Of a stretch of DNA of 64,000 nt, positions 1,762 to 54,524 are shown piece after piece. The stretch spans positions 62,001-126,000 of IMG/VR virus record IMGVR_UViG_3300023174_000046, one strand, 5' to 3'. Position 1 is the stretch's first letter. Each line of letters opens with the position of its first letter. Both the position numbers and the translations under genes were made by a program. Under the pieces are notes generated by a model. The model saw only the letters and a list, made by a program, of their open reading frames with translations. It was not told where the DNA came from and did not search any database.

Positions 1762-2493
1762 CTATTTGATTCTTTGAGCATTTTGTTGCATTGTATTTAT
1801 TTGCTTCTGAAGCTGCTGTATTTGCTGCACAAGCTGTTGATTGGCAGGTTGTTGACTCAATTGATTTGTAAGGTTTTGTAGTTTGTCCTGCTGTGTCTTT
1901 ACTTGCACAGCTGGCAGACCTACTGCACGTGGTATGCTACCAATTTGTTGTTGCAAACGATATGGATCGCCACCTGCTGCAGCTTTTAGGGACTGACCAA
2001 GAGCTCTTGGTGCATTTGTTATTGCAGAATATGCACCCACACCCTTCTGCAATGCTTTAATTGGTGCTGAAACTACTTTGCCAAGTATATTTGAGGCACT
2101 AGCTCTTGCAGGTGTATTTGCTGCAGCAATGCCTTTATTAGCATATGTTTGTTGTGCTGCAGCCAGCGGATCATTCTGTACTGCCCTCTGTACTGGTTGC
2201 ACTTTTTTTCTTGCAACTGGAGCTGCAGGTGCCTGTACTACCGCACCAGGTTGTGGTTGCGCTGTCACTTTGGGTTGTGGCTGTAAGGTTGGTTTGCCTT
2301 GTGCAGCTGCAGCTTGTGCTGCAACCTGATTGCGGTAATTTTGATTTGCAACTTGCTTGGGTGCATTAAATGTAACAGGGCTTTGTAGATTTGCTGTGCC
2401 AGTAGTTGTGGGATTGCTCTTCATGGCTTGAGCTCTCCTACTCTTTCTCGATTTCTCTGAAATTATATAATTATATAGGTCGTCAAATTTCAT
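1762..2493 (-). CDS. Gln/Ala/Pro-rich protein with capsid-targeting-like N-terminus (putative internal head protein)
   Basis: MKFDDLYNYIISE N-terminus, low-complexity body; ATGA overlap with the upstream gene. Confidence 0.55.
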   Translation of the reverse strand: MKFDDLYNYIISEKSRKSRRAQAMKSNPTTTGTANLQSPVTFNAPKQVANQNYRNQVAAQAAAAQGKPTLQPQPKVTAQPQPGAVVQAPAAPVARKKVQPVQRAVQNDPLAAAQQTYANKGIAAANTPARASASNILGKVVSAPIKALQKGVGAYSAITNAPRALGQSLKAAAGGDPYRLQQQIGSIPRAVGLPAVQVKTQQDKLQNLTNQLSQQPANQQLVQQIQQLQKQINTMQQNAQRIK

Positions 2494-2891
2494 TGTAACA
2501 TATATTCCTTGTAAAGATCTTTAAGTTGAGCATCATTAATGCCATTATCCTTGAGAATAGCTTCAATTGAAACAATGTCGTTGAGTTGCATTATCATTGC
2601 TGCAACTGTCTCGTTTCCTATTTTATTTGCGAGAAATGTCTTCAATGCTTCGAGTCGTGGATTTGTTGCATCCATCATAGAGGCAGGCATATTGACCATG
2701 GGATTCATTTCTGCTGCCGGCTTGATAACATACACTGAAACTGCACCTTCACACTCTTCTAATACATAGCCTTCGTAGCCTGCATATGCTTTAAAAGCTT
2801 GATGCTCTTTGTTTAGAGGATCATACTTTATGCGTACTCTTCTCAGATTTTGTTCACTTATGGTTTTTTCAATAATATTAAAAAACTTCAT
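2490..2891 (-). CDS. Hypothetical late protein with capsid-targeting-like N-terminus
   Basis: MKFFNIIEKTISE; TAAATA 9 nt upstream of ATG. Confidence 0.6.
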   Translation of the reverse strand: MKFFNIIEKTISEQNLRRVRIKYDPLNKEHQAFKAYAGYEGYVLEECEGAVSVYVIKPAAEMNPMVNMPASMMDATNPRLEALKTFLANKIGNETVAAMIMQLNDIVSIEAILKDNGINDAQLKDLYKEYMLQ

Positions 2892-2945
2892 CTTCTATAT
2901 TATTTATTATTGAAAATTTAAAACCTTAGGTTATATTATGTAAAT

Positions 2946-3596
2946 ATGTCTAAGAAAGTATTAATTCCATACGCAAATCATAACCATCCTCGCTCTGAAC
3001 AAGAGAAGAATGAGATTATTGATCATGCCGCAAAAGCTTATGAAGCTTATCTTGATGCGCTTTGTATTGATTGGCGCAATGATCCAAATAGCTCCAACAC
3101 ACCTCACCGAGTTGCAAAGGCCTTTGTTGAAGATCTAGCTTCTGGTTGCTACAGCACACCACCCAAAGTAACTGCATTTGCTAATGTGGATCAATATGAT
3201 GGCATTGTGTGTCAAAATAATATTAAAGTAACTTCACTTTGTTCACATCATCATGCAGCGTTCACTGGTGTAGCACATGTAGCATACATACCTTCTCGTG
3301 ATGGTAAGGTCATTGGCTTGAGCAAGCTCAATCGCATTGTAGATTGGTTTTCACGCAGACCACAAGTGCAGGAGAATCTCACCATGCAAATTCACCAGCA
3401 TATTGATCAAGCTTGTGAATTAAACAATGGTGTGGCAGTTATGATTGAGGCAAAGCATACTTGTTGTTCCAATCGTGGCATCAAGCATGACTCTACTATG
3501 CGCACTGCGCGCATGTCTGGTGCGTTCTTGGATAACAATGACAACTCTCGTTCTGAGTTTTACAAGTTTATTGAATTTGCACAAAATAGGGATTAA
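2946..3596 (+). CDS. folE: GTP cyclohydrolase I
   Basis: TPHRVAKA, SLCSHHHAAF, GLSKLNRIV, RRPQVQENLT, AKHTCCSNRG; promoter TTGAAA-N16-TATATT at 2910-2937. Confidence 0.96.
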   Translation: MSKKVLIPYANHNHPRSEQEKNEIIDHAAKAYEAYLDALCIDWRNDPNSSNTPHRVAKAFVEDLASGCYSTPPKVTAFANVDQYDGIVCQNNIKVTSLCSHHHAAFTGVAHVAYIPSRDGKVIGLSKLNRIVDWFSRRPQVQENLTMQIHQHIDQACELNNGVAVMIEAKHTCCSNRGIKHDSTMRTARMSGAFLDNNDNSRSEFYKFIEFAQNRD

Positions 3597-3598
3597 GT

Positions 3599-4180
3599 GT
3601 GGACCCATATTATACACATAGACCCCACCTTACCAAGATATTAGAGCAGCTAGATTTTACTAAAACAGTTAGATGTGTAGAGTTTGGTTCAGGTGATGGC
3701 TCGGGAGAAGTTTTTAAACAGTTTACGGAGCGCTACCCAAATCTTAAAGTTGTTTGTCTTGAATCTGACAGGGAGTGGTTTAACAGAACATCAGTAAAGT
3801 ATCAATCAAATAATTATAGGTATAAATTTGTGGAAAATTGGACCAATACAATTAAAAGTATTAGTCCAGAAGAAGTATTTGACCTTGCTTTTATTGACAA
3901 TGGACCGACTTGGGATACACGCATTCAAATTCTGGAACAAATTAAAAATCAATGCAAGCATATCATTATTCATGATTATGATTATTATAATAAAGGCCAC
4001 ATGGGTTTAGCAGATGGTCTCAATCTTGAGTATTATGAAGCATACCGCAACACTGAGCATGATATCTATTCTGTAGGTGCAAATAGTTTTTTTGGTAAGT
4101 ATGCAAAAAATTTTATACTTGAGGCACATAGCACAGAGCTACCACCAACACTTGTATTAACAAATAAGACTTTAATTTAG
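3599..4180 (+). CDS. Class I SAM-dependent methyltransferase (possibly sugar O-methyltransferase)
   Basis: VEFGSGDGS motif I, acidic LESD, FDLAFIDNG, IIIHD; GTG start 2 nt after the folE stop. Confidence 0.7.
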   Translation: MDPYYTHRPHLTKILEQLDFTKTVRCVEFGSGDGSGEVFKQFTERYPNLKVVCLESDREWFNRTSVKYQSNNYRYKFVENWTNTIKSISPEEVFDLAFIDNGPTWDTRIQILEQIKNQCKHIIIHDYDYYNKGHMGLADGLNLEYYEAYRNTEHDIYSVGANSFFGKYAKNFILEAHSTELPPTLVLTNKTLI

Positions 4181-4225
4181 CTAAGGTGCTGGTGGTGTAA
4201 CAGTTGGTGTTAGTGTTACTGTTTA

Positions 4226-7168
4226 TTATATGTACCTTGTTGCAAATGTTGCATAATATGTTCTAATCGCTCCTATATTACAGTATAGCGGGCCACTAGC
4301 GTACGACCAAACACCGCCGGTACTTCTTTTAAGAACATGAAACGAGTTATCAAAATTAGGACTGCCTTCAAAAGTACTTACAAAAAGCCCTATTGAATTG
4401 TCTGAAAAGACATTAAGCTTTAATGATTGTATGCAACTGGCTGCAGCTGGATTTAAAGAAATTCCTCCCAGACCTGCACTCTGGATAGTTGCAATAACTG
4501 TATTTGATATGACTGTGTTTGTAGTAAAATTATATTCTATGAATCCTATTCCACCTCGTATAAAGGAGCTCGTCTTCTTTGTATATGCAATATATGCTAT
4601 ATTTTTATCTGTTTTACTGAAATCTAGTCTAATAAGAGGTGATCTACCGTCAGTATTGACACCACCACCAATGCCAGGATCAGTTTTATAATCAGTAGTT
4701 ATGCTAGCATCTGTATATATAGCATTACTATTAAAATATAGTGCACCGTTTGAATAGCATGCAATATGATAGTTTCCAGAGTAGTCGCAATTGTAATCAT
4801 AATTATAAACAATACTTGGACCACTAAAGATAGCAGTATTGCCTGGGTATGCATATATTGTGCTGCTATTTCCTGCTGGATAAGCCCAGCTATAGTTCAG
4901 CAAATTATTTTTACTCTGTACAGCGACTACCGGAGATCCGTTTACAAAAAAACTATATACAGATGAATTTAACAGCGTTGGTGTCGCCCATGTAACACCC
5001 CTATCATTTGAAGATGAAACATATAGTGATACACCATTAGTAGAGCTGTAATTATTAAAATATATATAATAATACGTATTCATACCGTCTATAAAGAGGT
5101 TATCGTTACAAGGGGAAAATGTTGCAGGTGGTGCAAGATTGGCAGGTGTCGAAATGGTATCCCACGATGCACCGTTCCATCTTTTGAGAGTTCTTACGAG
5201 ATTCGTCCCATCTGTAATCATTGCAACTAAGTTATTATTCGCGTCGTTCTCATAAGCCATAACCATTTGTGTTCTACTGTTTCCCGTATACGGGAGTGTT
5301 GTAACTCTGCTAAGTGTTGCGAGATCATTTGTATATTCTCTTATTTCAAAAGGACTGTTTGCAAGAGAAGTTCCTTGAGCTAAGAAAGACATTTTCTGCA
5401 GATTGCTACCAACAGCACCAAGAGAGAATTCATAGTAATAATTAATGGCTACTGCAGGGCTGAAATAATTTGCCGATGTACCTACAGCTATGAATTTGTT
5501 TATTCCTGGGCAATAACATATATCATTTATAGTTCCCAGACCACCAGCAGTTTCATCTGGTATATCGAGAGAATACCATGTTTGAAGATCAAAGCTATAT
5601 CTACATCCCCTTTTATTTGTATTAAAGTTAATAGGACCTACTAAAACATATACACCGTTACCATATATAATTTTCCAAAACGCATTATTAACAGCAACCG
5701 CTCCTGCATTAACATCAACACTTACCCAATTATTGTTTTGTAGTAATCCAATATCACTTGTTGCACTACCTGTGCGATTGATGGCCATTGTGAAACCTAT
5801 CCAGCTACCATTCACATAATTAGCTGCTTTATATTTTTGATTGTCGGTAAATGCAAGAGGACCAGTTACTGGCGTGCCACCACCATCTGCAAGAGTTGTC
5901 TTTAGATACCCGTTAACTAAAAATTGCGGGCTTGCTATATTATTATTAAATGCAGCACCGTATGTGTTTTGATATACACCCTGCGAAAATTCATATGGCT
6001 TTGTCCAGCTTGTACCGTAGTTACTTGTTTCCTGGATGGCGTTATAAGTTTCTCCTATCAGCGCTATTTTGCTCGAACCGCTGCATATAACATCAATGTG
6101 TGACTGACTACCAAATCCGTTATCTGGCAGTACACTCGATGTCCAAGATATGCCATCGTTTGAAGTATATAAATATCTTGTAGCACCACCGGTACCACCA
6201 TATGTAAGACCGAAAAATTTATTTAATAGAGTTGAGAATTTAACATTACAGCCAGTTGCGCTACCAGGGTTTGGACACATTTGATTGCCCTGCGTCCATG
6301 TTGTGCCGCCATTTGTAGAATAAAAAGATTTTTGCCCAGATTCAAGAACAGGATTTATAACTATTGTAGTATCGTTAGCCGCTACACTGCCCCAGACTTT
6401 TGTAGCGGGTAGAGTTACTTTTTGAAAGCTTACAGTAGCAGGTGTAACAGGCTTGGTCGGTGTGGGTGTTATTGTTGGTGTAGGTGTCAGTGAAATTGTA
6501 GGTGTTACTGTAGGTGTTAGTGAAATTGTAGGAGTTACAGTTGGCGTGGGTGTTAAAGAAATTGTAGGTGTTAGTGAAATTGTGGGGGTTACAGTTGGCG
6601 TGGGTGTTAATGAAATTGTAGGTGTTAGTGAAATTGTGGGGGTTACAGTTGGCGTGCAGGTGCGTGTTGGCGTAAGTGAAATTGTAGGTGTTACTGTTGG
6701 TGTTGCAGTGGGGGTTCCTGTGGGTGGTGGTGGCGTTACAGTTGGTGTTGGTGTCACAGTTGGTGTGCAGGTGCGCGTTGGTGTTAATGAAATTGTAGGT
6801 GTTACTGTTGGTGTAACAGTTGGTGTACAGGTGCGCGTTGGTGTAACAGTTGGTGACACCCCCGGTGTAGGTGTTGGTGTTACAGTTGGAGTACGCGTTG
6901 GTGTAACAGTCGGTGTACAGGTGCGTGTTGGCGTAAGTGAAATTGTAGGTGTCAGTGAAATTGTGGGTGTTGGTGTCAAAACTGGAAGCGGTGTATTGGT
7001 TGGGTTTGGTGTTACATTTGGTGGTGGGGTTACAGGAATTACTTGGTAATCTGTATATACATTTGTAACATTTACTACTGAAGCAAGATTTGTTTTTTTA
7101 TACTGTACACCGTTAATAGTTACATAATTACAGTCTGACGGCACTGCAGCGTCAGGTAGAATTATCAT
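4226..7168 (-). CDS. Putative virion adhesin/fibre: ~200 aa Pro/Thr-repeat stalk followed by BNR/Asp-box beta-propeller domains
   Basis: [16 protein letters not shown] repeats; Asp-box-like [41 protein letters not shown]. Confidence 0.75.
6440..7036 (-). repeat. Coding mosaic minisatellite (12- and 18-bp units encoding [16 protein letters not shown])
   Basis: Repeated gtgaaattgt[ag]gg and caggtgcg[ct]gttgg units directly visible. Confidence 0.95.
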
Positions 7169-7578
7169 ACCTGCCTGCTATTAATATCGATAAGTGCATC
7201 CAAGCTTTTCAAAAACTCTCTTCCCAACAAAACAGGTGTTTCATTTTTGCTTCTATCTGCAATAGAGAATTTTACTTTATTATATTTTTTGCCTTTGAAA
7301 GTGATATCAAACTCTACAATAGGTCTATCTTCATTAACACCCGATCCTATGTGTATTACAATTGTATCAGCAATATCCTTGTGTAGCGGTAAATTTTTTG
7401 TTGTTGAAACAAATCTTACCTTATTACCATCCATTTGTATCTCTCGACCGTCAAGAACGTTAAAAGCACTGTTACCTGAATCGGCCATGCTTTCAACTGT
7501 ACCAACACCTTCAATGGTAATGGGTTCTATTAAATTAACTACGCTTTTTTCGGAATAATAGCAACGAAAGGGCTTCAC
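7165..7578 (-). CDS. Retropepsin-like aspartic protease (RimK-associated 'ATP-dependent Zn protease' family)
   Basis: MADSGN catalytic D-S-G, ERP-like EDRP, FSIADRS...PVLLGREFL; TAAATA 5 nt before GTG. Confidence 0.8.
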   Translation of the reverse strand: MKPFRCYYSEKSVVNLIEPITIEGVGTVESMADSGNSAFNVLDGREIQMDGNKVRFVSTTKNLPLHKDIADTIVIHIGSGVNEDRPIVEFDITFKGKKYNKVKFSIADRSKNETPVLLGREFLKSLDALIDINSRQV

Positions 7579-7582
7579 CCCT

Positions 7583-7792
7583 TTATTTATTGTTTTTATT
7601 GTATGAAAGCTTAGTAGGCTTCTCTATATATTCACCCAAGTGTTTTGAGAATAATTTTACTTGATCAACAATAATATCTTTCTCTTCACCCTTCAATTTC
7701 TTTGTGCGTTCATATAAATCTAGTATAAAATCAGAGCTTATCTTAATATAGCTCACACCATCTTTGAGCTGATTTTTGTGATGAAATTTCAC
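7583..7792 (-). CDS. Hypothetical protein (69 aa)
   Basis: ORF with TAAGTA 5 nt upstream of the GTG start. Confidence 0.6.
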   Translation of the reverse strand: MKFHHKNQLKDGVSYIKISSDFILDLYERTKKLKGEEKDIIVDQVKLFSKHLGEYIEKPTKLSYNKNNK

Positions 7793-7868
7793 CTAAGTAC
7801 TTAAGAGAAAAGTTGATAAGTCTACTATTTATTAAAAAATTTTGCCCCATGTTTGCATAAATATTAAT

Positions 7869-8396
7869 ATGTACAGGAATGATATAGAAAATCTAAATAA
7901 TGCTTTCTTTAAAATACTCAATGAAGGTACTGCAGATTTGGGTCCACAGGCAGATTCTCAGCAAGGCCTTTCACCTGTTATACCAACTATAATCAAAACA
8001 AAAGAAGACGAAGAATGTGAGAATTGTAGTTGTGGTGATTCTGCTGCACCTGCTACAAGAGATCCCGATGAAATAGAGATGTCAAGAAGTGAACTATATA
8101 ACACAATTCATCATGCCGTTAGCTTATATTCAAAGCTCAAGACAATCAATAATCTTGAGGCTTGGGCAAGAGCAAAAATAACAAAAGCAGCCGATTATTT
8201 GAATTCTGTCAAACATTATCTTGATCATGAAGAAGTACAGAGCGAACAAAATGAAGAGATAGATCTCTTTAGCGCGTTTGATAAAGGATCAACAGATATC
8301 ATTGGTAAGCTTTCTGGTATTCTCTCTAGAGAGAGCAAAGAAAATCTCGAAAAGATTCTTTTTGAAGTTGTGCAGTTAATCGAAAAGAAGTCTTAG
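7869..8396 (+). CDS. Conserved T4-like hypothetical protein (LEAW..KIT.A.DYL domain), putative head-internal
   Basis: EMSRSEL...NLEAWARAKITKAADYLNSVKHYL; real start ATG 7869, 5 nt after TAAATA. Confidence 0.7.
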   Translation: MYRNDIENLNNAFFKILNEGTADLGPQADSQQGLSPVIPTIIKTKEDEECENCSCGDSAAPATRDPDEIEMSRSELYNTIHHAVSLYSKLKTINNLEAWARAKITKAADYLNSVKHYLDHEEVQSEQNEEIDLFSAFDKGSTDIIGKLSGILSRESKENLEKILFEVVQLIEKKS

Positions 8397-9181
8397 TAAT
8401 TCATTCTGCCTACAGTTAATTCACCATCAGCCTGATAAGGTGGGTTAGTAAGCTTGTCGTTATATGCTTTATCTCTATCCTTGATTAACTCTTTATTCAT
8501 AAAGCTACTCATTTCATTCTCTTCGCTGCTTTGAATGGTAAGATGTTTATCAAAAATTTTCTTTATCTTATCGTAGTTTTTAATGTAAAGTTTTTTAATT
8601 AAATTTATTTTTTGATTATCATTCAGTGTGCTATAAAGATTGCGTAATTCAGATGCACTTTTAATATTTTTGCCAAAAATTTCACTACCAAATTCTATTG
8701 TTGGGAATGTATAAATGTAGCCATGCTTTGCAAATGGTTCCATATTTTCTTTTGAAAAATCTTGAAAATAAGAAGGTGTACCGTCTTTCTTGACGCGTGT
8801 AAAGAGTGATTTCCTTGTGGGGTCTTGTTTTTCCTTATCACTCATAGCAAATATAACCTTATCTTTCTCTGGGTTATATTTTTTCAGAATCTCTTCTGAC
8901 CTAAACGGTGATTTTACTTCTATGATTTTATTAGGGTCTATTCCTGTAGATGAAATAATAAGTTTCTTCTCTTGAGCTGTAAACGGTCTTTCTTCAGTAT
9001 AGCCTGTTATTGCAATATATGAATCTGCATCGGGAAATGTTTTCTGTATATTTTCAAAAATGCTTTTATGACCTAAATGAAAAGGATGAAAGCCACCTGG
9101 AAAAATTACTATTGTTTTTCCTGCCGACTCAACAATGAAATGTTTCTTAAAGATATTTTCTACTAACAGATCAAATTTCAT
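8393..9181 (-). CDS. HIGH-superfamily (cytidylyltransferase-like) nucleotidyltransferase
   Basis: IVIFPGGFHPFHLGH (HxGH), RPFTAQEK, KSASELR. Confidence 0.82.
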   Translation of the reverse strand: MKFDLLVENIFKKHFIVESAGKTIVIFPGGFHPFHLGHKSIFENIQKTFPDADSYIAITGYTEERPFTAQEKKLIISSTGIDPNKIIEVKSPFRSEEILKKYNPEKDKVIFAMSDKEKQDPTRKSLFTRVKKDGTPSYFQDFSKENMEPFAKHGYIYTFPTIEFGSEIFGKNIKSASELRNLYSTLNDNQKINLIKKLYIKNYDKIKKIFDKHLTIQSSEENEMSSFMNKELIKDRDKAYNDKLTNPPYQADGELTVGRMNY

Positions 9182-9501
9182 TTATTTATATCTATATCCG
9201 GGTCATATTTTCTTACGAGGGTAATAATTTGCGAGAGGACGTCCTTTGCATTTTCAGGATTTACATCCGGCATCTCAAGAATTGTATCTGTATCTGTGGT
9301 ATCGGGTTTAATTACAAGAGCTTTCTTGAGCAATCTTACCAGCATTGCTTCTCCTTCTGATGTAAGTGGTGCGGCTTGAGGTGCTTCTGGAGCAGGTGCA
9401 GCTGCTGGAGGCATTGCTGCGTCTTGTTCTGGTGGTAGTGCAGAAGCAGGTTCTTGCTCAAGTAAAGGTTGATATTTTTTTAGTGTTTCTGTGAATTTCA
9501 T
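9178..9501 (-). CDS. Hypothetical protein with Pro/Ala-rich linker and capsid-targeting-like N-terminus
   Basis: MKFTETLKKYQPLLE. Confidence 0.6.
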   Translation of the reverse strand: MKFTETLKKYQPLLEQEPASALPPEQDAAMPPAAAPAPEAPQAAPLTSEGEAMLVRLLKKALVIKPDTTDTDTILEMPDVNPENAKDVLSQIITLVRKYDPDIDINK

Positions 9502-9504
9502 AAA

Positions 9505-9981
9505 TTAGGTTTGTATTTGATTTGCAACATTTTTTATTTTAGTAGAAAGCTTTTTGAGAAGAACACCGTAAGATCTTTCAATATCTTTCTGCGGGTTATC
9601 AAAAGGATTCAAGCCGCCTCTTGCTTGACCACCTGCAAGAGTTTTTACTAATGCAAGATCATTTGCTGAAATTGTATTTTTACCGAGTATACTTGAAATA
9701 TTCTCTGCATTTTCTTCACCACCCTCTTCTGTGCTGTCTCCTTGCGGTGCAAAGATATCAACAACAAGATTACCATCTTCATCCATATCTACAATGTTAT
9801 AACCTGCAGAATGCTTGCGCATCATGCAATGACACTTCTTTTTAGATGTAGGGTGTTCATAGCTATGTACAATATCAAATTCGTCCGAAATATCAGGCTG
9901 ATTGCCACGTTTTTCGTGTGTCTCTTTGACGAGGTTTAAATTGTCATATATGGAAGATAGTTTAACAAGATACTTGCTCAC
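9505..9981 (-). CDS. Hypothetical late protein
   Basis: TAAATA-N5-GTG. Confidence 0.6.
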   Translation of the reverse strand: MSKYLVKLSSIYDNLNLVKETHEKRGNQPDISDEFDIVHSYEHPTSKKKCHCMMRKHSAGYNIVDMDEDGNLVVDIFAPQGDSTEEGGEENAENISSILGKNTISANDLALVKTLAGGQARGGLNPFDNPQKDIERSYGVLLKKLSTKIKNVANQIQT

Positions 9982-9992
9982 ATATATATTTA

Positions 9993-10559
9993 TTATTTGA
10001 GAAGCAGTTGTTTTGATTTAATTGCATTAAAGTAGATGTTAGATAAGAAGGTTAACCCGTATTTTTGTGAAAAAATGCGTATTTTTTGAAATGTAAACCT
10101 CTCGTAATTAGTCTTTTCAATAAAAGCTTTAATATTGAAGAGAATCTCTATGCCTTTTGCTTCATTTCTTTTCATTAAATGTGTAAAATATTCAAACGAA
10201 TAGCTTGTGATAAAGATCTTAATTGGAAGCAGTTTTGTTATTTTGCGGAGTAAAAGTTCAATAAAGAGAATAAGCTCTTCTTCAGGGACATACTTGTTGA
10301 GATCTGTTTTTGGAAGACTATTTGTATTATAAAAAACTACCACTTTCTCATTACTTTTTGCATGCAACACTTCTTCACATAATGCATATATTATGTTGTG
10401 ATACAATAATTTCTTGATATCTTTATTTCTTAGCTTTATATCTGTTAATTTATACTCGCCTAGATGTGTAAAAAAGTTGTGCAGGAACTTGCCGTTATAT
10501 ATTCTCGTAAAGTTTATAACATTTAAATTGTGATTTGGTAGTGATAGACTATCTATCAT
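9993..10559 (-). CDS. Hypothetical protein, weakly resembling the T4 RNase H N-terminal fold without catalytic Asp residues
   Basis: Promoter TTGAAT-N16-TATACT-N7-ATG (10567-10594); fold similarity judged by eye only. Confidence 0.55.
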   Translation of the reverse strand: MIDSLSLPNHNLNVINFTRIYNGKFLHNFFTHLGEYKLTDIKLRNKDIKKLLYHNIIYALCEEVLHAKSNEKVVVFYNTNSLPKTDLNKYVPEEELILFIELLLRKITKLLPIKIFITSYSFEYFTHLMKRNEAKGIEILFNIKAFIEKTNYERFTFQKIRIFSQKYGLTFLSNIYFNAIKSKQLLLK

Positions 10560-10586
10560 ATCTTACAGTATAGGTGATCCTATATA

Positions 10587-11012
10587 TTATTCAACAAATC
10601 GACTTTTAAATTCAGCAGGCGGTGTACCAATTCTCACATTTATTATTCCATTATAATAATCATCTCGAAGTAGCACATCTCGAGATATCTGTTCTTTTAT
10701 TTCAAAATAAGCCAACTCCCACTTTGAATTGCATGTACGTAAAATCTTAAAAGTAAATTTCTCTTTACCAAGCTTTAGAATATCTGCGTTAAGATCGTTT
10801 GAGGAGCTTGTATAACCCTTCCAGTCCGATTCTTTCATTTCAATTCTATTTCTCGTTTTACCCTTAAGAGGCTTTCTTTTTAACCTGGATTTGCATTGTT
10901 TTTTACCGATGTATTTTTTATTTGTAATTACATTTGTTATTTCATATATAAAACCGAATGTTGTTTCGTCTAAAACGACACCTTCGTGCAGAAGCCAGTG
11001 ACCTGTATCCAT
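10587..11012 (-). CDS. GIY-YIG endonuclease
   Basis: FGFIYEITN...KKYIGKK, ESDWKGYTSS, YFE, YYN; TAAATA-N5-ATG. Confidence 0.88.
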   Translation of the reverse strand: MDTGHWLLHEGVVLDETTFGFIYEITNVITNKKYIGKKQCKSRLKRKPLKGKTRNRIEMKESDWKGYTSSSNDLNADILKLGKEKFTFKILRTCNSKWELAYFEIKEQISRDVLLRDDYYNGIINVRIGTPPAEFKSRFVE

Positions 11013-11041
11013 TACGCTATTTAACTACCGGCTCGCAAAAG

Positions 11042-11302
11042 TCACATGCCAATAAAAGGTCTGCGTATAACAACCATCTTTGATTTATTTTTGCCTTTAG
11101 TTTTTTTGGCGCCCAAAGCAACCGGTTTGCGAAAATCGCCTTCTGCATACTTATCTTTACCGGGTGTACCTGAGGGATTGTCCTTCCAGTCTGATGTCTG
11201 GAATGTGCCCAGCGAACCGCCAGAACCAGCTGTATTTGAGGCAGCAGGTGCACCGCCTATATCCTCCATAAGCTTGGCAAACAATACGTCAAACATTTTC
11301 AC
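11042..11302 (-). CDS. Small late protein with capsid-targeting-like N-terminus and basic tail
   Basis: MKMFDVLFAKLME; perfect TATAAATA at 11309-11316. Confidence 0.6.
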   Translation of the reverse strand: MKMFDVLFAKLMEDIGGAPAASNTAGSGGSLGTFQTSDWKDNPSGTPGKDKYAEGDFRKPVALGAKKTKGKNKSKMVVIRRPFIGM

Positions 11303-11308
11303 TTTAAT

Positions 11309-11316
11309 TATTTATA
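11309..11316 (-). promoter_or_regulatory. T4-type late promoter TATAAATA
   Basis: Exact T4 gp55 consensus, 6 nt before GTG. Confidence 0.8.
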
Positions 11317-11336
11317 ACATATACTATAATAAAGAT

Positions 11337-11735
11337 ATGGAATTTAATATTCAGAAAATATTAATCGAAATTGAGAAAGACGTTGCTGTAGATGAATTAA
11401 ATCTACGGGAAGTGCAGTTCAAGCTACCTGCAATTAAGCATAAGTATGCTGGTCTTTTGATTAGATCGAAGATTGAGCTCAATAATAAGAAGAAGGAGCT
11501 TGATGAGCAGCGCAAGAGCGCTGTAGAGCAGATAAAAGAGAAAAGCCCTGTTAAATTAGCACCCAATACACTATTTGATACTGCAAATGAACTACCTAAT
11601 CTCAAAAAAATACGTAGCGAGATAGAAGAAATTGACTTGCTCATAACATTGTTAGAGAAAACTGAAAAGACCCTTTCTTCAATGACCTATGATATAAAGA
11701 ATATTATTGAAATACAAAAGCTTGAGACAACATGA
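11337..11735 (+). CDS. uvsY: Recombination mediator UvsY (real start ATG 11337)
   Basis: D..IDE..L...LP.IKHKY... and YDIKNIIE C-terminus; directly upstream of uvsW; TATAAT-N6-ATG. Confidence 0.82.
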   Translation: MEFNIQKILIEIEKDVAVDELNLREVQFKLPAIKHKYAGLLIRSKIELNNKKKELDEQRKSAVEQIKEKSPVKLAPNTLFDTANELPNLKKIRSEIEEIDLLITLLEKTEKTLSSMTYDIKNIIEIQKLETT

Positions 11736-14688: not shown

Positions 14689-16490
14689 AAAAAATTATCT
14701 TTAACAAAATTTCAATAAAAAACTTTCTTTCTGTAGGAAGCGAGCCTGTCGTAATTGATTTTAAGACAGGGTTACATATTATTACAGGTCTTAATAAAGA
14801 TAAGGAAGACCGTCGTAATGGTGTTGGTAAATCTACTGTTGCTGATGCTATATACTTTGCTATTTTTGGTTCTACGTTGAGAGAGCTTAAGAAAGAGCAT
14901 ATTGTTAATAATACTAATAGAGAGAACTGTGAAGTTATCCTAGATTTTGATATTGAAGGATTTGATAGAAAAGATGAATATCAAATTATAAGAATGCTTG
15001 AACCGTCACGTTGCTATGTGTACAAGAACGGTGAAGACAAGACACGAGACAGCATTATTAATACTACTGAATATATTTTTGAAAAGATTAATTGTTCACC
15101 TGATATTTTTCAGAATTGTGTTATTATGACTGTTAATAATACTATACCTTTCATGGCAAAGAAGAAGATTGAAAAGCGAAAATTTATTGAAGGGATTTTT
15201 AATTTAGAAGTTTTTAGTACTATGTTGCAACGTCTTCGTGATGAATACAATGAATCAAAGAGAAACTTTGATATTGAATCAACAAAATGTACAGAGATTG
15301 AAAATAGCTTATCTCTACAGGTTACAGCAAAAGAAGTTTACAATAAAGAGCGTGACGCCAAAAGAGAGAAATATACCGGTCGTAAAGAAAGCAACATAAA
15401 GGAACTACAGCTACTTGACAAAAAAATAAATGAATTTACTGCTTTAGATATTAAGAAGATTGAGAAAGACATTAGCACACTTACAACAAAAGCTGAAAAA
15501 ATTGATCAAGAAATTAAAGTGTTGCGTGACAAGACTTCCTCATATCGCACACAGATTGAATTAAAAGAAAAAGACTACAAGCGAATTGGAACAGATAAAG
15601 ATGCTTGCCCTACATGTTTACGTGCACTAGAAGATAAAGATAAAAATCATATTAAAGAGGAGAAACAAAAAATTAAAAAAGAGATTAGTGATTTTGAAAA
15701 TAAGATCAACACTAATGTTGCAAAAGAAGAAGAGTCTTCTGCACTAGAGCTTAAGCTGTATGGAGCAGTAGAGAGCTTGAAGGGCAAGATTAATGCTTTT
15801 AATCTAGAGCAAAAAGAATTAGAGAGTATTAAAACTCGAATAAATCAATTAAATGTATGGCAAAAAGAGCTAGATATTGATCTCGCAGAACTTAGCAAGA
15901 CAAACAATCAACACGATACAAATATTGAAGATATTACAAAGCGACTTGAGGAAATAAAGAGTGTGCTTGAAAAGACAAAGATACATTTCAATATGCTTGA
16001 TGCTGTAAAATTTGTGTTATCTGAAGAAGGCGTAAAATCATATATTGTAAAAAAGATTCTTCAGCTCTTTAATAGCAAACTTGCTTATTATCTAAAGAAA
16101 ATGGATTCGAATTGCATTTGTATTTTTAATGAATATTTTGAAGAAGAGATTATTGATGAAAAGGGCAAACCATGTTCTTATTTTAATTTTAGTGGTGCAG
16201 AACGGAAGAATATAGATCTAGCATGTTTGTTTGCTTTTATGGATATAAGACGTTTACAAGGTAATGTCGCATTTAATTTTAGTGTGTATGATGAGCTGTT
16301 TGATTCATCTCTCGATGAAAAGGGTGTAGAGCTTGTACTGGGTATTTTACGAGAAAGAATTGAAAAATATAATGAATGTATTATGGTGATTAGTCACCGC
16401 AAAGAGAGTGTAAAATTTGCTTCAGGTGATATTATTTTTCTAGAAAAGAAAAACGGTATTACTAAACGTATTGAATACAGCGATTATTAG
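14685..16490 (+). CDS. gp46: Recombination ATPase subunit (Rad50/SbcC-like)
   Basis: KNFLSVG, NGVGKS, coiled coil with CPTC hook, FSGAE signature, DELFDSSLD, ISH. Confidence 0.95.
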   Translation: MKKIIFNKISIKNFLSVGSEPVVIDFKTGLHIITGLNKDKEDRRNGVGKSTVADAIYFAIFGSTLRELKKEHIVNNTNRENCEVILDFDIEGFDRKDEYQIIRMLEPSRCYVYKNGEDKTRDSIINTTEYIFEKINCSPDIFQNCVIMTVNNTIPFMAKKKIEKRKFIEGIFNLEVFSTMLQRLRDEYNESKRNFDIESTKCTEIENSLSLQVTAKEVYNKERDAKREKYTGRKESNIKELQLLDKKINEFTALDIKKIEKDISTLTTKAEKIDQEIKVLRDKTSSYRTQIELKEKDYKRIGTDKDACPTCLRALEDKDKNHIKEEKQKIKKEISDFENKINTNVAKEEESSALELKLYGAVESLKGKINAFNLEQKELESIKTRINQLNVWQKELDIDLAELSKTNNQHDTNIEDITKRLEEIKSVLEKTKIHFNMLDAVKFVLSEEGVKSYIVKKILQLFNSKLAYYLKKMDSNCICIFNEYFEEEIIDEKGKPCSYFNFSGAERKNIDLACLFAFMDIRRLQGNVAFNFSVYDELFDSSLDEKGVELVLGILRERIEKYNECIMVISHRKESVKFASGDIIFLEKKNGITKRIEYSDY

Positions 16491-17374
16491 TCTGAAGAAG
16501 TATAATTTCTATCGCCAACTGCTTGCGGTATAACTCTTCTACCAAATTCTCTTCGCGCAATATCCTCAATATCTGGCTCAAGTCCTGTTTCGAGAGCCTC
16601 TGGCTCTTTTGTTATGTCTTCAGGGTTAGCTAGCTTATAATAATCAACAGCTAGATCTACAAAGTTTTGAAAATAATCAAAATTATCTTTTGGATCAACC
16701 TTAAAAAACTCTTCTTTTTCTTTCTTATCCAACATATCTTCTGCTGTACTACGTGCTGCAGCTTCAATTTGTTTTCTTAGTTCTTCCGGATTGCTTGTTT
16801 CAAATGTATCAGACAATTCATCGTATACTCTTGGACTTATTTTATCATATTTGCCAAAATTTGGTGTTCCTGTTCTTGTAAAAATCTTTTCTGCTTCAAT
16901 GGTTGCAGGCACATCACTCTTTGATATTTCTTTATTTTTTGCTCCTGCTTCTACAGCCTTTTTAACTGCAGCTGGTGATGTGGCATTACCGCCTTCACCA
17001 TCTGTTCGTATAACATTAAGCAAGTTATCTGCAATACGAGCTGTATAACCAGCCTGAGTTTTGCCAAGCTTAAGCTCATTCTTAACAAGATCTATCAATT
17101 CAGCGCGAAACTTATCTTTGCTCCCCGGGTAATAAAGCTGATATTCAACACCATCAACTGTATGTGATGCAGGCTTAAAAAGTTTTGTTTTAATTGTATC
17201 AATTAGTCCCTTGACTTGATCATCAGATAAACCCTTAAAACCATAACCGCCACCTGCGCTTGCCCGTGGATCAGACGAGAAACCTAGATCACCTGGCCCA
17301 AAAACAGGTATTTCACTAATTAATTGTGTTTTTGCGTAAGCTTCAAAAATTAGCTTAGAGTCTTTATTATTCAT
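16487..17374 (-). CDS. Hypothetical late protein with capsid-targeting-like N-terminus
   Basis: MNNKDSKLIFEAY..LISE; TAAATA 8 nt upstream of ATG. Confidence 0.65.
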   Translation of the reverse strand: MNNKDSKLIFEAYAKTQLISEIPVFGPGDLGFSSDPRASAGGGYGFKGLSDDQVKGLIDTIKTKLFKPASHTVDGVEYQLYYPGSKDKFRAELIDLVKNELKLGKTQAGYTARIADNLLNVIRTDGEGGNATSPAAVKKAVEAGAKNKEISKSDVPATIEAEKIFTRTGTPNFGKYDKISPRVYDELSDTFETSNPEELRKQIEAAARSTAEDMLDKKEKEEFFKVDPKDNFDYFQNFVDLAVDYYKLANPEDITKEPEALETGLEPDIEDIARREFGRRVIPQAVGDRNYTSSD

Positions 17375-17410
17375 GCTTGAATTATTTATTGTTTGTATTA
17401 ATATATTTTC

Positions 17411-39754: not shown

Positions 39755-39762
39755 TATAAATA
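39755..39762 (+). promoter_or_regulatory. T4-type late promoter TATAAATA
   Basis: Exact consensus 8 nt before the sheath ATG. Confidence 0.85.
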
Positions 39763-42080: not shown

Positions 42081-42095
42081 CGAATAAATAATTTT

Positions 42096-50480: not shown

Positions 50481-52096
50481 GTATTAAAACTATGGTACCA
50501 CAACTTTGCGATATTAATCTTGCATCGTCAAAGTTTATACTTGAAAAATATACTAACTATCTCGAATACTTAGGCGATTTTGTAGATCAAATAGAAACAG
50601 CCTTAAAGTATAGAGATACTTTTTTTGATAACGACTCAATAAAAAATAGAATTAATTTCTTTGATAGCTTACAAGATAAATTTGAAACTTTTAGTGATGA
50701 TTTTGTTGCTTATTGGTACGAAATATACAGAAGTAATCCCGATTTTATAAAATCTGAAGTTAATAGCAGTACACTCAAGCTTGATAGTGATAGTATTGGA
50801 AAATTTACCAATTCTACTTATATCATTGATGATAGTATAAGCCCTATTTCTGATTGGTCGATGAATAGCTCCCCACCACCTTCATATATACCTTATAATA
50901 CACTACAAAAGATTTCACCTTGGACAAAGCAAATGATTGAAAGGGCAAGCTTCAGAACTACTAATATGTATCGTAGTAATATTGTAATGGTACAGCCGCA
51001 GGACGCAAGCCCCGTAAGAGCACACGGGACAAACCTCGTTACAGATGAATTATACTTTACAAGAACAGTATCAGAAATTAAAAGAATAGCTGTAGAAAAA
51101 ATTACCAAAAAATTTGAAAAAGAGATAAAAGTATTACTACGTTATTGTAATATTAACGATAACGAAGCCTTAAATTATCAAGATTTAAATCAAAACAAAA
51201 GCTATGTTGGGCAATATACTTTTGAAATAGATGTTGAACGCGTACGGTATCAAGTAGATGTTTTATCAAATAGAATCAAGTACCTTAAAAGTAGAATATC
51301 TAACGAAGAAGTCTTATCATCAGAAAAAATTGCTACTGTTAATATTGAACAAAAATCAACATCTCAATTGGATAGGATTTACAAAAACAATCTACTTACA
51401 CGTTTAGATCAATTGGTACCACGCAATATATACAAAACAGTTTCAGTCATTGAGCAAACAAAAACAATACCAGCTTCTGAAACGTTTGGTGAATTAAATG
51501 TAGCTGCTGAAAATACTGGTAATACACAAACTGCACCCAAGCAAAATATACCTTCAACGTTTCAACATTACCCCGATAACGTATCTCTCCCAACATACCA
51601 AGCCCCAAAGTGGGTAAACGATTTTGCGCAGTGTTTGGGTGTCGGCTCTACACTCAAAGCTTTTGAAGGGTTTGCAGATCCTCTTACAAACTTTGCTAAT
51701 GCTTCTTCTACCGATTTTGATCTTTTCGGTGCATTAAACAAAATTAATCCTTTCGGAATAGATCTAGCAGGGTTTAATATTGAACCTGATGCATTCTTAC
51801 AGCAATTACAGCAAATGCTCAATTCGTTTGATGTATCCACTATACCTGCATTATTCGGTTCAAGCTTCCCAATACCATCATTCACTCTTGGCGAGCTCTT
51901 TGATATGGGTGGCAAAGTTGGTGATCTGAAAGAAGTAGCACTTAAGCAAGCACAAGACATTGCTCTAAACACTATAAAGGATCAAACACTTAACTTGCTC
52001 AATAGCTTAGTTTGCGGCACCGCTCAGAATGTGTTGGCCGGTAGTGGTGGTGGTTTCGGTCCGTTCAATAGCTTGACTAGCGGGCTCATTGGTTGA
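50477..52096 (+). CDS. Hypothetical structural-module protein
   Basis: ATGA-coupled to the hub gene; 3' end overlaps the gp16-like gene by 90 nt. Confidence 0.6.
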   Translation: MSIKTMVPQLCDINLASSKFILEKYTNYLEYLGDFVDQIETALKYRDTFFDNDSIKNRINFFDSLQDKFETFSDDFVAYWYEIYRSNPDFIKSEVNSSTLKLDSDSIGKFTNSTYIIDDSISPISDWSMNSSPPPSYIPYNTLQKISPWTKQMIERASFRTTNMYRSNIVMVQPQDASPVRAHGTNLVTDELYFTRTVSEIKRIAVEKITKKFEKEIKVLLRYCNINDNEALNYQDLNQNKSYVGQYTFEIDVERVRYQVDVLSNRIKYLKSRISNEEVLSSEKIATVNIEQKSTSQLDRIYKNNLLTRLDQLVPRNIYKTVSVIEQTKTIPASETFGELNVAAENTGNTQTAPKQNIPSTFQHYPDNVSLPTYQAPKWVNDFAQCLGVGSTLKAFEGFADPLTNFANASSTDFDLFGALNKINPFGIDLAGFNIEPDAFLQQLQQMLNSFDVSTIPALFGSSFPIPSFTLGELFDMGGKVGDLKEVALKQAQDIALNTIKDQTLNLLNSLVCGTAQNVLAGSGGGFGPFNSLTSGLIG

Positions 52097-52522
52097 TACA
52101 TCGATAACGTTAGCTTCTTTTACGAGCTTCTTGAACATATCCTCTCTTGTACCGACAAGCATGTCCTTAGCTTCACCGATAAGATCTTTCTTGATTTCAT
52201 GGTCCATTTTTTTTAAGTCTTTAAGAGTATTGCTCTTTTTATCCTGCACAATTATTTTGTTTAAAGTCTCTATAGCAGTTGATGTTGCATTTAATAATTC
52301 TGCATATGCAGATAAATCTTTTGCATCAGGCGCCGCGTTTAAATAAACATTTAAATTCTTTACTAAATCTAAACCTTCATTAATTACAGTACTAGCACTT
52401 TCAATCACATACTCTTCTAAATTTTCTTTTGTAGCAGCTTTACGAAATTCTTTCTTAACTTCAGTATTTTTTTCTTTTAAAGCATCTATTATATTGTCAA
52501 TGTCATCACTATTATCAGGCAT
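52007..52522 (-). CDS. gp16: Terminase small subunit gp16-like
   Basis: Helical core G...V..L.......DA....AYAELL......IE.L.KI and late LVGTREDMFK motif as in T4-like gp16; TAAATA-N7-ATG. Confidence 0.62.
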   Translation of the reverse strand: MPDNSDDIDNIIDALKEKNTEVKKEFRKAATKENLEEYVIESASTVINEGLDLVKNLNVYLNAAPDAKDLSAYAELLNATSTAIETLNKIIVQDKKSNTLKDLKKMDHEIKKDLIGEAKDMLVGTREDMFKKLVKEANVIDVSTNEPASQAIERTETTTTTGQHILSGAAN

Positions 52523-52570
52523 ATATAGTTATTTATCTTGATTTCTAGAATTCTATATTATTATTAATAT

Positions 52571-53005
52571 ATGAGATCAGTACTAGAATTTATTAAGACG
52601 CATGAAGACGCGGTTTTACCCACGAAAAACCATGTTAATGATACAGGATATGATGTTTATAGTATTAAGAGTGTATGTATACCGGCACGAGGCTCTAATA
52701 TTGTGCCTGTAGGTCTTCAGTTTGCATATATTCCAGAAGATTATTGGGTAAGAGTAGAGTCGCGCAGCGGTTTAGGGTTCAAGCACGGTATAATGGCGCA
52801 TCCAGGTATTATTGATAATGGTTACCGTGGTGATGCAGGTATTAAGCTCTACAATTTAACTGAAAAGGACTATACAGTTTCGCGTGGTGATAGAATTGCA
52901 CAGTTTGTCTTGTACCCATTAATTTCAAATGTAACAGTTGGGTTTACTGAAGTAGTAGCTGAATCAGATAGAGGTGACAAGGGGTTTGGAAGCTCTGGTA
53001 AATGA
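52571..53005 (+). CDS. dut: Trimeric dUTPase
   Basis: DTGYD, SRSGLG, GIIDNGYRG, GDRIAQ, RGDKGFGSSG. Confidence 0.96.
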   Translation: MRSVLEFIKTHEDAVLPTKNHVNDTGYDVYSIKSVCIPARGSNIVPVGLQFAYIPEDYWVRVESRSGLGFKHGIMAHPGIIDNGYRGDAGIKLYNLTEKDYTVSRGDRIAQFVLYPLISNVTVGFTEVVAESDRGDKGFGSSGK

Positions 53006-53934
53006 ATTTTAATAATCTCTGGGTTGAAAAATACCGACCTAAATCTTTGTCTGATATTGTACTTGTTGAAGAGACGAGATCAATAGTTAATTCATTTAAA
53101 GACAAAAAAGAGATACCGAATCTCCTGTTAATCGGCATACAAGGTATTGGAAAAACTTCTCTGGCAAAAATCATTGTCAATGACATCTTAGGGTGTCAAT
53201 ATCTTTATATTAATGCAAGCGATGAGAATGGTATTGATACTATACGAAACAAGGTTGTAAGCTTTTCTAAGACCAAAAGCTTTGATGGTGGTATCAAGGT
53301 CATTATACTAGATGAGGTAGATGGTATTAGCCTAGAAGCGCAAAAAGCATTAAGAAATACAATGGAGGAATATTCTGCTAATACGCGTTTTATTTTGACA
53401 GGAAATTACAAGCATAAAATCATACAAGCGCTGCAAAGTCGTTGTCAGGAGTTAAATCTTATTCCCCCTTTAGAAGGCATGGCTAAGCGAGTATTAACAA
53501 TTTTAAGAAGTGAAAGTATAAAGCTAGATGATGCTCAAAAGAAAGACCTTGTTACTTTAATAAAAAAGCTGTACCCAGACTTTAGAAAAATAATTAACGA
53601 GATTCAAAAATTTAGCAGCTCTGGCTCTCTAACCATACCACAGCTATCCATTAACAACGATATTATTGTGAAGATAGCTGGATTTATAAAAGAAAAGAAG
53701 AGTAATATTGGTAGAAAATATTATATTGAAAATGAAGAAAAATTTCAAGGTGACTACACAACACTATTGCGTGAGCTTTTCAATTTTACAAATGATGCGT
53801 TAGATTTTAATAATGAAAAAGCAAAAAAAGCTTTGCTTGTTATTTCGGAGCATTTATATAGGAGCAGTTTTGTAGTTGATCAGGAGATTAACTTTTACAG
53901 TTGTATTATTGCGCTTGAAGGGCTAATAAGTTAG
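53002..53934 (+). CDS. gp44: Clamp loader large subunit (RFC-like AAA+)
   Basis: LWVEKYRP, G.QGIGKT, INASDENGIDTIR, ILDEVD, Q.ALR, LQSRC, YPDFRK. Confidence 0.95.
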   Translation: MNFNNLWVEKYRPKSLSDIVLVEETRSIVNSFKDKKEIPNLLLIGIQGIGKTSLAKIIVNDILGCQYLYINASDENGIDTIRNKVVSFSKTKSFDGGIKVIILDEVDGISLEAQKALRNTMEEYSANTRFILTGNYKHKIIQALQSRCQELNLIPPLEGMAKRVLTILRSESIKLDDAQKKDLVTLIKKLYPDFRKIINEIQKFSSSGSLTIPQLSINNDIIVKIAGFIKEKKSNIGRKYYIENEEKFQGDYTTLLRELFNFTNDALDFNNEKAKKALLVISEHLYRSSFVVDQEINFYSCIIALEGLIS

Positions 53935-54524
53935 CGCTTTGGCAAGTAACGGTGTACGTAGCTAGCTACCGAAGGTGACTTGTCGCCTTCCGCAGGCACT
54001 GCAGGAATCTTAACATTTTTATTAAGAAGCTTTCTATCGCCCTTTATAAGTTTACCTTTACCGTCATCGGAAGTTACTGTATGTGCAATTTGTTGCTCAT
54101 CTTCAGGTTTTTCTTGTTCAGGTTTAATTTGTGTCTTATCTTTTCTCTTTAATGAATCAGGAATAGGTGGTAAGTCCGTGCCATTATTATAAGGTTGTAA
54201 GAATTTTCCTGGAACTGTCAAGTACTCAACATATCTTCCAGGGGCAATTTCTTGTGTAATATCTACATCAAATTCACTGCCTGTAATCTCTGCATTGCCA
54301 CCACCTTGTGTTGTGGGTCTGATAGGCTTCACAGCACCTACTCTCAACAGAAGATCTGATTCTGCCCACGATTTTAACTTATTTTGGTATGCTTCTGTCT
54401 GATCTTTAAAAAAGTCCGATTTAAAAACTTCTGGTTTAATATGCACCATGTAACCATATAAAAACCCGCCACGTGTAAATTGCTGCAGGTATGACTCTAG
54501 CAAACCATTAAACTTTCTTTTCAT
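53931..54524 (-). CDS. Hypothetical late protein with capsid-targeting-like N-terminus
   Basis: MKRKFNGLLE; TATAAATA at 54531-54538, 6 nt before ATG. Confidence 0.65.
   Translation of the reverse strand: MKRKFNGLLESYLQQFTRGGFLYGYMVHIKPEVFKSDFFKDQTEAYQNKLKSWAESDLLLRVGAVKPIRPTTQGGGNAEITGSEFDVDITQEIAPGRYVEYLTVPGKFLQPYNNGTDLPPIPDSLKRKDKTQIKPEQEKPEDEQQIAHTVTSDDGKGKLIKGDRKLLNKNVKIPAVPAEGDKSPSVASYVHRYLPKR

Follow-up and report, generated by a model that had tools for sequence, protein, structure and literature searches.

Genes with related N-terminal leaders

The window analyzed here is a stretch of 64,000 nucleotides (nt), corresponding to bases 62001-126000 of the 217,413-bp virus record IMGVR_UViG_3300023174_000046, which derives from freshwater lake metagenomes. 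Between positions 1762 and 54524 it carries 13 genes whose products begin with short peptides resembling the capsid-targeting sequence (CTS) of phage T4 internal proteins. The original prediction, made from the sequence alone, had described these products as unrelated proteins that share such a leader and had proposed that they are packaged in the head, cleaved by a gp21-type protease and injected with the DNA. All 13 quoted N-termini are present at the coordinates and on the strands listed below, three of them (7578, 9981 and 11302) with GTG start codons. The proteins are indeed unrelated: BLAST found no similarity among them outside the N-terminus and no paralogy among the carriers. Most have no Pfam or PHROGs family, the exceptions being a retropepsin-like peptidase and an HxGH nucleotidyltransferase. 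In the list, lengths are given in amino acids (aa), "clustered" marks members of the largest N-terminal cluster described below, and N5 and similar symbols give the number of nucleotides between a TAAATA promoter core and the start codon.

1762-2493, minus strand: 243-aa protein; leader MKFDDLYNYIISE; clustered
2490-2891, minus strand: 133-aa protein; leader MKFFNIIE/KTISE; clustered; AATAAATA 9 nt upstream (core 2901-2906)
7165-7578, minus strand: retropepsin-like (RimB/RloA-like) peptidase (Pfam and NCBIfam), 137 aa; leader M/V-KPFRCYYSE; promoter AATAAATA-N5 (core 7584-7589)
7869-8396, plus strand: 175-aa acidic protein; 19-aa N-terminus ending in ILNE; CATAAATA-N5 (core 7858-7863); weak member
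8393-9181, minus strand: nucleotidyltransferase (HxGH type), 262 aa; 18-aa leader with two sites, LLVE and FIVE; clustered
9178-9501, minus strand: 107-aa acidic Pro/Ala-rich protein; leader MKFTETLKKYQPLLE; start 3 nt past the 9505-9981 gene
9505-9981, minus strand: 158-aa protein, GTG start; AATAAATA-N5 (core 9987-9992); weak to moderate member
11042-11302, minus strand: 86-aa protein; leader (V)KMFDVLFAKLME, capsid-arm copy and basic tail; TATAAATA-N6 (core 11309-11314)
16487-17374, minus strand: 295-aa protein; LIFE class (..D-x-K-LIFEAY.., then LISE); clustered; AATAAATA-N8 (core 17383-17388)
33437-33847, minus strand: 136-aa acidic protein; leader MTMKSFSDRFISLFE; TATAAATA-N12 (core 33860-33865)
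33867-34235, plus strand: 122-aa basic protein; short leader MISFKKMCE; ATTAAATA-N5 (core 33856-33861); weak to moderate member
36475-37410, minus strand: 311-aa acidic low-complexity protein; leader MNKVRDLLDLSALYE; clustered; CATAAATA-N5 (core 37416-37421)
53931-54524, minus strand: 197-aa protein; leader MKRKFNGLLE; clustered; TATAAATA-N6 (core 54531-54536)

The claim of a shared motif held only in its narrower form. A loose hydrophobic-x-Glu rule occurs near N-termini at chance level, whereas a more restricted leader family was recovered both by clustering and by the T4 pattern. All-against-all ungapped comparison of residues 2-20, with pairs scoring at least 30 joined by single linkage, gave 71 high-scoring pairs, whereas offset windows gave 28-32 and shuffles that preserved composition about 20. 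Twenty-three proteins fall into the largest cluster, a size that none of 23 controls approached (8 at most); the controls included windows following an internal Met as well as the composition-keeping shuffles. Among the window proteins the cluster contains those starting at 2493, 2891, 9181, 17374, 37410 and 54524. The second-largest cluster is an ordinary Rossmann strand-loop.

The T4-type decapeptide pattern, aromatic-x-x-h-h-x-E (h, hydrophobic) with the aromatic residue at position 3-5, was found in five proteins against 0.79 expected (p = 0.0013). That T4 leaders are of the MKTYQEFIAE type, as had been assumed, was borne out by the T4 record, in which this leader was read for ipII and ipIII. 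The matches include the 7165-7578 protein and the products of two adjacent genes outside the window (genome 192825-193665, plus strand; L004:2326-3166), which start with MKKFKEFFTE and MKTFKEFYLE. These genes, starting at genome positions 192825 and 193399, meet the T4 pattern exactly, as does the 7165-7578 protein, and their products are the best candidates for true internal-protein analogues. A relative, L016, encodes a 47-aa basic open reading frame (ORF) that starts with MRTFKEFFKE. A second class has ..LIFE-(A/S/N)-(Y/F) near the N-terminus of six proteins, all encoded behind a late promoter or coupled to a gene that has one. The window leaders other than that of the 7165-7578 protein are longer or shorter variants with an aromatic residue near the start and hydrophobic-x-Glu at the end. 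Solid members are the proteins starting at 2493, 2891, 7578, 9181, 9501, 11302, 17374, 33847, 37410 and 54524; those at 7869, 9981 and 33867 are weaker. The family is larger than first noted, with at least 13 further members elsewhere in the genome and at least 26 in total. No internal-protein or Alt family was detected for any of the 13 with PHROGs and Pfam, the T4 proteins themselves not being directly compared; in T4-type phages, cargo identity does not define the class.

Modularity, late promoters and conservation of the leaders

Comparison with homologues shows the leader to be a separable module on unrelated cargo. In the nucleotidyltransferase family, about 90 homologues begin at the first strand of the fold and have no leader, while the approximately 30 closest relatives carry 9-22 extra residues, of several interchangeable leader types, directly before that strand; structure and family matches of the window protein itself begin at residues 21-26. 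The retropepsin-like family retains the leader with little variation. All 29 distinct N-termini compared have F4, Y/F7 and a hydrophobic residue at position 8, and 28 of them have Glu at position 9 or 10; these are exactly the positions used in T4 for targeting (4 and 7) and processing (8 and 10). One small cargo has a 10-residue leader here and a 14-residue one in L016, and in syntenic relatives with 57-79% identity the residues of the leaders change but the pattern is kept. Outside the window, the gene at genome 16822-17388 (plus strand; L005:7323-7889; TAAATA-N5) encodes a leader, MRFDDTVKSILE, followed by a poly-Pro linker and a phage lysozyme domain. Its product is a candidate head-packaged or ejected muralytic enzyme.

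The genes had been said to lie mostly behind TAAATA promoters or to be coupled to genes that do, and this proved accurate: ten of the 13 have (A/T)TAAATA 5-12 nt ahead of the start codon, and the other three are coupled, their starts (2493, 9501 and 9181) overlapping or abutting the upstream gene. Across the genome, 39 genes have exactly 5 nt between the end of the element and the start codon, and another 14 genes have 6. It also precedes the sheath, tube and protease genes; in the window, the two relevant cores are as follows.

39757-39762: TAAATA core before the sheath gene at 39771
42085-42090: TAAATA core before the tube gene at 42096

Judging from these promoters, the leader genes are probably expressed late, at the time of prohead assembly. 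The sequencing runs listed as containing the window are all DNA runs from lake metagenomes, with no RNA run among them. An equal frequency of the motif in early genes had been named as evidence against the prediction. Hydrophobic-x-Glu with Glu at residues 8-15 is commoner behind late promoters (21 of 67 genes, against 39 of the 230 others; p = 0.0097). In the replication modules of four relatives TAAATA-driven genes are few, and nearly all of them are opposite-strand leader genes.

No Shine-Dalgarno (SD) signal was seen ahead of any gene class. In the T4 record late promoters lie 20-30 nt upstream and an SD sequence is present. T4 late transcripts start about 6 nt past TATAAATA; if the same holds here, late mRNAs would be leaderless and begin at the A of ATG. 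Several of the promoter-abutting starts are GTG, and the promoter arrangement is kept in relatives. A 67-aa ORF at 27399-27602 (plus strand) has a weak match to ribosomal protein S21, scoring 24.1 bits where the cut-off is 27, and the syntenic gene in relatives gives the same Pfam match. Together with the missing SD sequences, this ORF hints at a host in which initiation is not SD-led.

Individual members differ in how closely their leaders are conserved. The predicted mature part of the 243-aa protein is extremely basic (isoelectric point 11.7; 28 Lys and Arg against 3 Asp and Glu). Its start, at 2493, overlaps the stop of the promoter-bearing 2490-2891 gene, to which it is thus coupled, and the L017 orthologue retains a MSKFNNFFHSLIE-type leader; a scan of viral contigs with this protein as query gave no match. 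The L017 orthologue of the 2490-2891 product begins with MKFDQLIE. The 7869-8396 protein lacks an aromatic residue at position 3-4, but its orthologues in L008, L010 and L016 retain (I/V)-(I/V)-N-E and the promoter. Downstream of the promoter at 9987-9992 the genes form an operon in the order 9981, 9501, 9181, the nucleotidyltransferase gene being translationally coupled to the 9178-9501 gene. Orthologues of the 9178-9501 protein begin with MKFLETLKKYQHLLE and MKFLETLKKFEALYE, and those of the 9505-9981 protein have Y-E at residue 13, where the window copy has Y-D and its next site at residue 20.

The 86-aa protein contains a 45-aa stretch that is 67% identical to residues 74-118 of the capsid protein (E = 8e-18). 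Its gene has a coding score of 0.34 per codon, and the protein is conserved in L008 and L010, with a diverged leader of the same pattern. Mechanical gene calling favours an overlapping ORF on the plus strand (11046-11735), whose real start, at about 11337, gives a 132-aa UvsY-like protein. A gene for a SegE-like GIY-YIG homing endonuclease (10587-11012, minus strand) lies between the 86-aa gene and the 9993-10559 ORF, a position conserved in relatives.

The 295-aa protein is encoded by the sole opposite-strand late gene within the replication module, and promoter and orientation are retained in L008, L010, L012 and L013. Its family comprises 56 homologues; D5, I9, E11, A12, Y13, E21 and P23 are invariant in 26 aligned sequences, and the N-terminus is among the best-conserved parts. 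An AlphaFold2 (AF2) model shows an N-terminal helix at residues 5-14, at low confidence (residues 1-33 have a predicted local distance difference test score, pLDDT, below 50); the mean pLDDT of 60 was too low for a fold search. The 197-aa gene runs opposite to the flanking clamp-loader and baseplate genes. Its family includes at least 235 representative clusters, and [FYW]-x-x-h-x-E occurs in the first 30 aa of 134 of 150 members, the Glu being commonest at residue 10.

The genes starting at 33847 and 33867 have divergent promoters. The former encodes a protein beginning MTMKSF..., with orthologues starting MSLFERKFGIVLE (L013, N5) and MRTFKNRFFSLLE (L016, N8). The latter has a low coding score; its orthologues begin with VKRKLLFE (L013) and, behind TATAAATA-N5, MSAFKKLYE (L016). 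The L016 orthologue of the 36475-37410 protein begins with MNRVRDLVDLSAVYE behind TAAATA-N5. Two further products may be added, the first of which is absent from the list in the original prediction.

36475-37092, minus strand: predicted nested 205-aa product from an in-frame internal start; leader MNNKSIFDKLYE; TATAAATA-N5 (core 37098-37103)
52007-52522, minus strand: possible extra member, 171 aa; N-terminus ending in ALKE at residue 17; GATAAATA-N7 (core 52530-52535); weak

Some neighbouring genes deserve mention. A 980-aa ORF (4226-7168, minus strand) is translationally coupled to the retropepsin-like gene; its counterparts differ widely in length, measuring 911 aa in L017 and 1620 aa in L016, and being represented by a 166-aa call in L008 and a 555-aa call running off the locus in L010. 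Searches of isolate phages by megablast and tblastn recovered no close relatives of the 980-aa, 197-aa and 295-aa proteins, and tblastn with the nucleotidyltransferase found two distant matches only. Interleaved with the leader-gene cluster at 1762-11302 are a QueD-like gene (841-1482, minus strand), a GTP cyclohydrolase I gene (2946-3596, plus strand) and queC (22788-23525, plus strand). These suggest a 7-deazaguanine pathway, possibly for DNA modification.

Head genes, avoidance of the cleavage motif and rival explanations

By its sequence the source virus is a deep-branching T4-like myovirus of an uncultured freshwater lineage. Capsid, sheath and protease all match T4-type families; the tail sheath and major capsid protein are approximately 27-35% identical to their T4 and cyanomyovirus counterparts, the capsid protein being 27% identical to that of T4 and about 34% to that of the nearest cultured phages. 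A gp21-family protease gene lies at genome 46984-47658 (PF03420, Peptidase_S77; 110 bits, E = 1e-32). Its product is 34% identical to T4 gp21, and the gene adjoins those for a gp22-like scaffold, a 50-aa gp67-like protein and a single gp23-family capsid protein. The capsid protein has four hydrophobic-x-Glu sites within its first 61 residues, the last of them at residue 61. Its exact maturation site is uncertain: E61 is predicted as the last N-terminal site, because the E65 site of T4 gp23 aligns in BLAST with a Glu-free stretch near residue 91, so that the predicted site is not the position homologous to T4 E65.

Proteins that reside together with an active prohead protease cutting after hydrophobic-x-Glu should avoid this motif in their bodies. 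In the predicted mature parts of the 26 leader proteins there are 58 sites, compared with 85.0 expected from their own composition, an observed/expected ratio (O/E) of 0.68. Random sets of 26 other proteins gave 1.13 +/- 0.09, and none of 5000 was as low as 0.68. The ratio is 0.63 for the 13 window proteins and 0.74 for the 13 elsewhere. Control motifs are not depleted in the leader proteins (h-x-D 1.22, h-x-K 1.26, h-x-Q 0.95, E-x-h 1.18), and late genes without a leader have an O/E of 1.11 for hydrophobic-x-Glu. The scaffold, in contrast, holds 25 sites where 6.3 are expected, a fourfold enrichment. The few T4 proteins compared behave alike: IPII* and IPIII* contain no site, and gp22 contains 23 where 13.7 are expected.

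The genome thus has both a modular, late-promoter-linked leader family and a gp21-family protease gene, and the members of the family avoid the cleavage motif in their bodies. As an account of these data, the proposal of capsid targeting and gp21-type cleavage is well supported, though indirectly, by several independent lines of analysis, namely the protease gene, the T4-like leaders, modularity, late promoters and motif avoidance, although the loose motif by itself does not discriminate. We put the probability that most of these proteins are capsid-targeted and processed at roughly 0.65. In this mechanism, the genes would be transcribed late from (A/T)TAAATA promoters, and a leader of 9-21 residues, with an aromatic residue near position 3-5, a hydrophobic pair and then Glu, would dock each protein on the scaffolding core of the assembling prohead. 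The gp21-family protease would remove the leader by cutting after hydrophobic-x-Glu, and the mature proteins would remain in the head alongside the DNA. The 86-aa protein, which joins a leader to a copy of the capsid N-terminal arm, was counted in favour of head targeting. The predicted cargo comprises a very basic protein of 230 aa, the nucleotidyltransferase, the retropepsin-like peptidase, the capsid-arm mimic and several proteins without a family. Some of it might be ejected into the host at infection, as are T4 IPI-III and Alt, and other members may be degraded core components; injection is clearly less probable than targeting and processing. More tentatively, and somewhat against the odds, 26 or more genes, some 9% of all genes, may supply a head payload larger than that of T4, with leader classes swapped between cargos. 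Such a payload would include the nucleotidyltransferase, the retropepsin-like peptidase, the lysozyme and the capsid N-terminal-arm mimic, and would be comparable to that of jumbo phiKZ-like phages.

Several observations weigh against capsid targeting and processing. Of the 297 genome proteins, 83 (28%) have [LIVMFYW]-x-E with its Glu at residues 9-21, and in internal control windows the share is 22-31%. Motif discovery, a check named in the original prediction, gave the 23-member family when done by clustering, but expectation-maximisation on the first 22 residues, although it beat shuffles, converged on a Rossmann-type strand/Gly-loop motif. Leaders of 8-21 residues in at least three classes are unlike the fixed decapeptide of T4. 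Conservation in the LIFE class extends beyond the Glu (E-A-Y), more as expected of a binding helix than of a simple cleavage site, and in the 197-aa family the Glu always stands four residues ahead of a conserved R-[YF], so that the motif may belong to the fold. The orthologue of the 2490-2891 product in the more distant L016 has a leader without Glu. Nor is the cargo uniform: the body of the 33437-33847 protein is rich in sites (5 against 2.2 expected) and may thus be that of a degraded core protein, and the 36475-37410 protein is acidic, is encoded next to neck and terminase genes and may be a core protein destroyed rather than carried. A tblastn search of 50,697 phage records found no close relative of the lineage, and a complex prediction pairing the prohead protease and the first 32 residues of the 2490-2891 product scored 0.00, which counts neither for nor against.

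The resemblance of the leaders could be due to chance combined with N-terminal bias (Met-Lys starts, AT-rich early codons, amphipathic first helices), with no shared function. The frequency of hydrophobic-x-Glu in control windows agrees with this, as do the prevalence of Lys as second residue genome-wide and a looser 13-residue regular expression that matched 8 times against 7.6 expected. Yet a cluster of 23 where controls reach at most 8, a single enzyme fold on which leaders come and go, the conservation of F4, Y/F7, Y/F8 and E10 in the retropepsin-like family, and a body-wide motif avoidance that cannot arise from N-terminal bias have largely refuted this explanation, which we consider very improbable. 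Marginally less probable still is a constraint imposed by translation initiation on near-leaderless late mRNAs. The promoter core does abut the start codon, and no SD signal was seen; but other late genes that have this promoter layout, tail and baseplate genes among them, begin differently, often with Met-Ala, and lack the peptide, the promoterless coupled genes (2493, 9501, 9181) bear leaders nonetheless, and conservation is at the level of the amino acid pattern, across diverged codons.

The two other explanations accept a functional leader. Its destination might be not the prohead but the tail, the membrane, a chaperone or some other late structure or partner, and both the helix-like LIFE motif and the leader-tagged lysozyme, which could equally be tail-associated, fit this. 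The specific avoidance of a gp21-type motif points instead to proteins that share the head with its protease, some leaders closely resemble that of T4 ipII and ipIII, and one is fused to a capsid-arm copy; we regard a different target as improbable, though less so than the explanations above. The most serious rival, itself unlikely, is that the leaders mark proteins of prohead core or assembly that are later degraded or expelled, with little or no injected payload. T4 gp67, gp68 and gp22 are such core proteins, acting in assembly only and then degraded or expelled. The site-rich 33437-33847 protein would suit this role, as would the 36475-37410 protein, acidic and of low complexity like the tail of T4 gp67 and encoded in the head/neck module, and the 86-aa protein, which copies a capsid-protein segment. 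Most leader proteins, however, have fewer internal sites than expected (O/E 0.63-0.74), whereas the scaffold has more; the cargo includes folded enzymes with no obvious assembly role (the nucleotidyltransferase, the retropepsin-like peptidase and, elsewhere, the lysozyme); and the 243-aa protein is very basic, as T4 internal proteins also are.

Comparison with known systems

Of all phage proteins, those packaged in the head arrive in the host first; T4 uses them against restriction and to reprogram RNA polymerase. To our knowledge, the targeting peptide has so far been characterised in T-even phages. The proteins listed here are concrete candidates for injected effectors of an uncultured freshwater phage, and the combination of leader, late promoter and motif avoidance provides a testable computational signature for packaged proteins in metagenomes. 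If the interpretation is correct, the leader together with motif avoidance in the body would allow the "injectome" of uncultured phages to be read computationally and mined for host-takeover or anti-defence proteins.

The closest parallel is with T4 internal proteins, which likewise combine a short N-terminal peptide on unrelated proteins, late expression, a gp21-family protease and mature parts without the motif. The T4 IPIII leader relies on residues 4 and 7 for targeting and on residues 8 and 10 for processing (PMC9026906). The same arrangement (aromatic at both 4 and 7, hydrophobic at 8, Glu at 10) is seen in the 7165-7578 protein and the two genes outside the window. T4 has three carriers, whereas there are at least 26 here, with leaders of 8-21 residues in at least three classes, including LIFE-A-Y/F. 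The cargo here has no PHROGs similarity, and the genes, known from sequence alone, stand singly on the opposite strand, scattered through the replication module.

T4 Alt is a packaged and injected ADP-ribosyltransferase with propeptides removed by gp21. As an enzyme carried in the head behind a short propeptide ending in I-T-E, it offers a precedent for a leader-tagged nucleotidyltransferase and peptidase, although there is no sequence relationship and the enzymes here are small (137-262 aa). The internal-protein loci of T-even phages are polymorphic and encode diverse anti-restriction proteins with only the CTS in common (PMC3012670). There too the leader alone is conserved, cargo is diverse and turns over, and leader and cargo recombine. 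The genes described here, in contrast, are spread beyond any single hyperplastic locus, and several of their cargos have been kept throughout a deep uncultured lineage, with 56 to more than 235 homologue clusters.

The giant phages phiKZ, 201phi2-1 and SPN3US have processed head, inner-body and ejection proteins. Their diverged gp21 homologue cleaves after Glu and acts on many head proteins, 19 of them in 201phi2-1. A large protein payload and processing after Glu, here predicted, are common to both systems. Giant phages, however, use S/A/G-x-E in long propeptides with multiple sites, whereas the P3 position is hydrophobic in all leaders described here, which precede Glu with hydrophobic-x and occur with a T4-like capsid, protease and tail; they are not of the phiKZ-like class. 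The mechanism itself is already known from T4. What is new is a near-T4 leader at this evolutionary distance, in at least three interchangeable classes, on at least 26 carriers that include enzymes, encoded by dispersed opposite-strand late genes and in one case joined to a capsid N-terminal-arm mimic. The presence of a related peptide at 27% capsid identity, on about eight times as many proteins as the three internal proteins of T4, suggests that the CTS mechanism is ancient and expandable.

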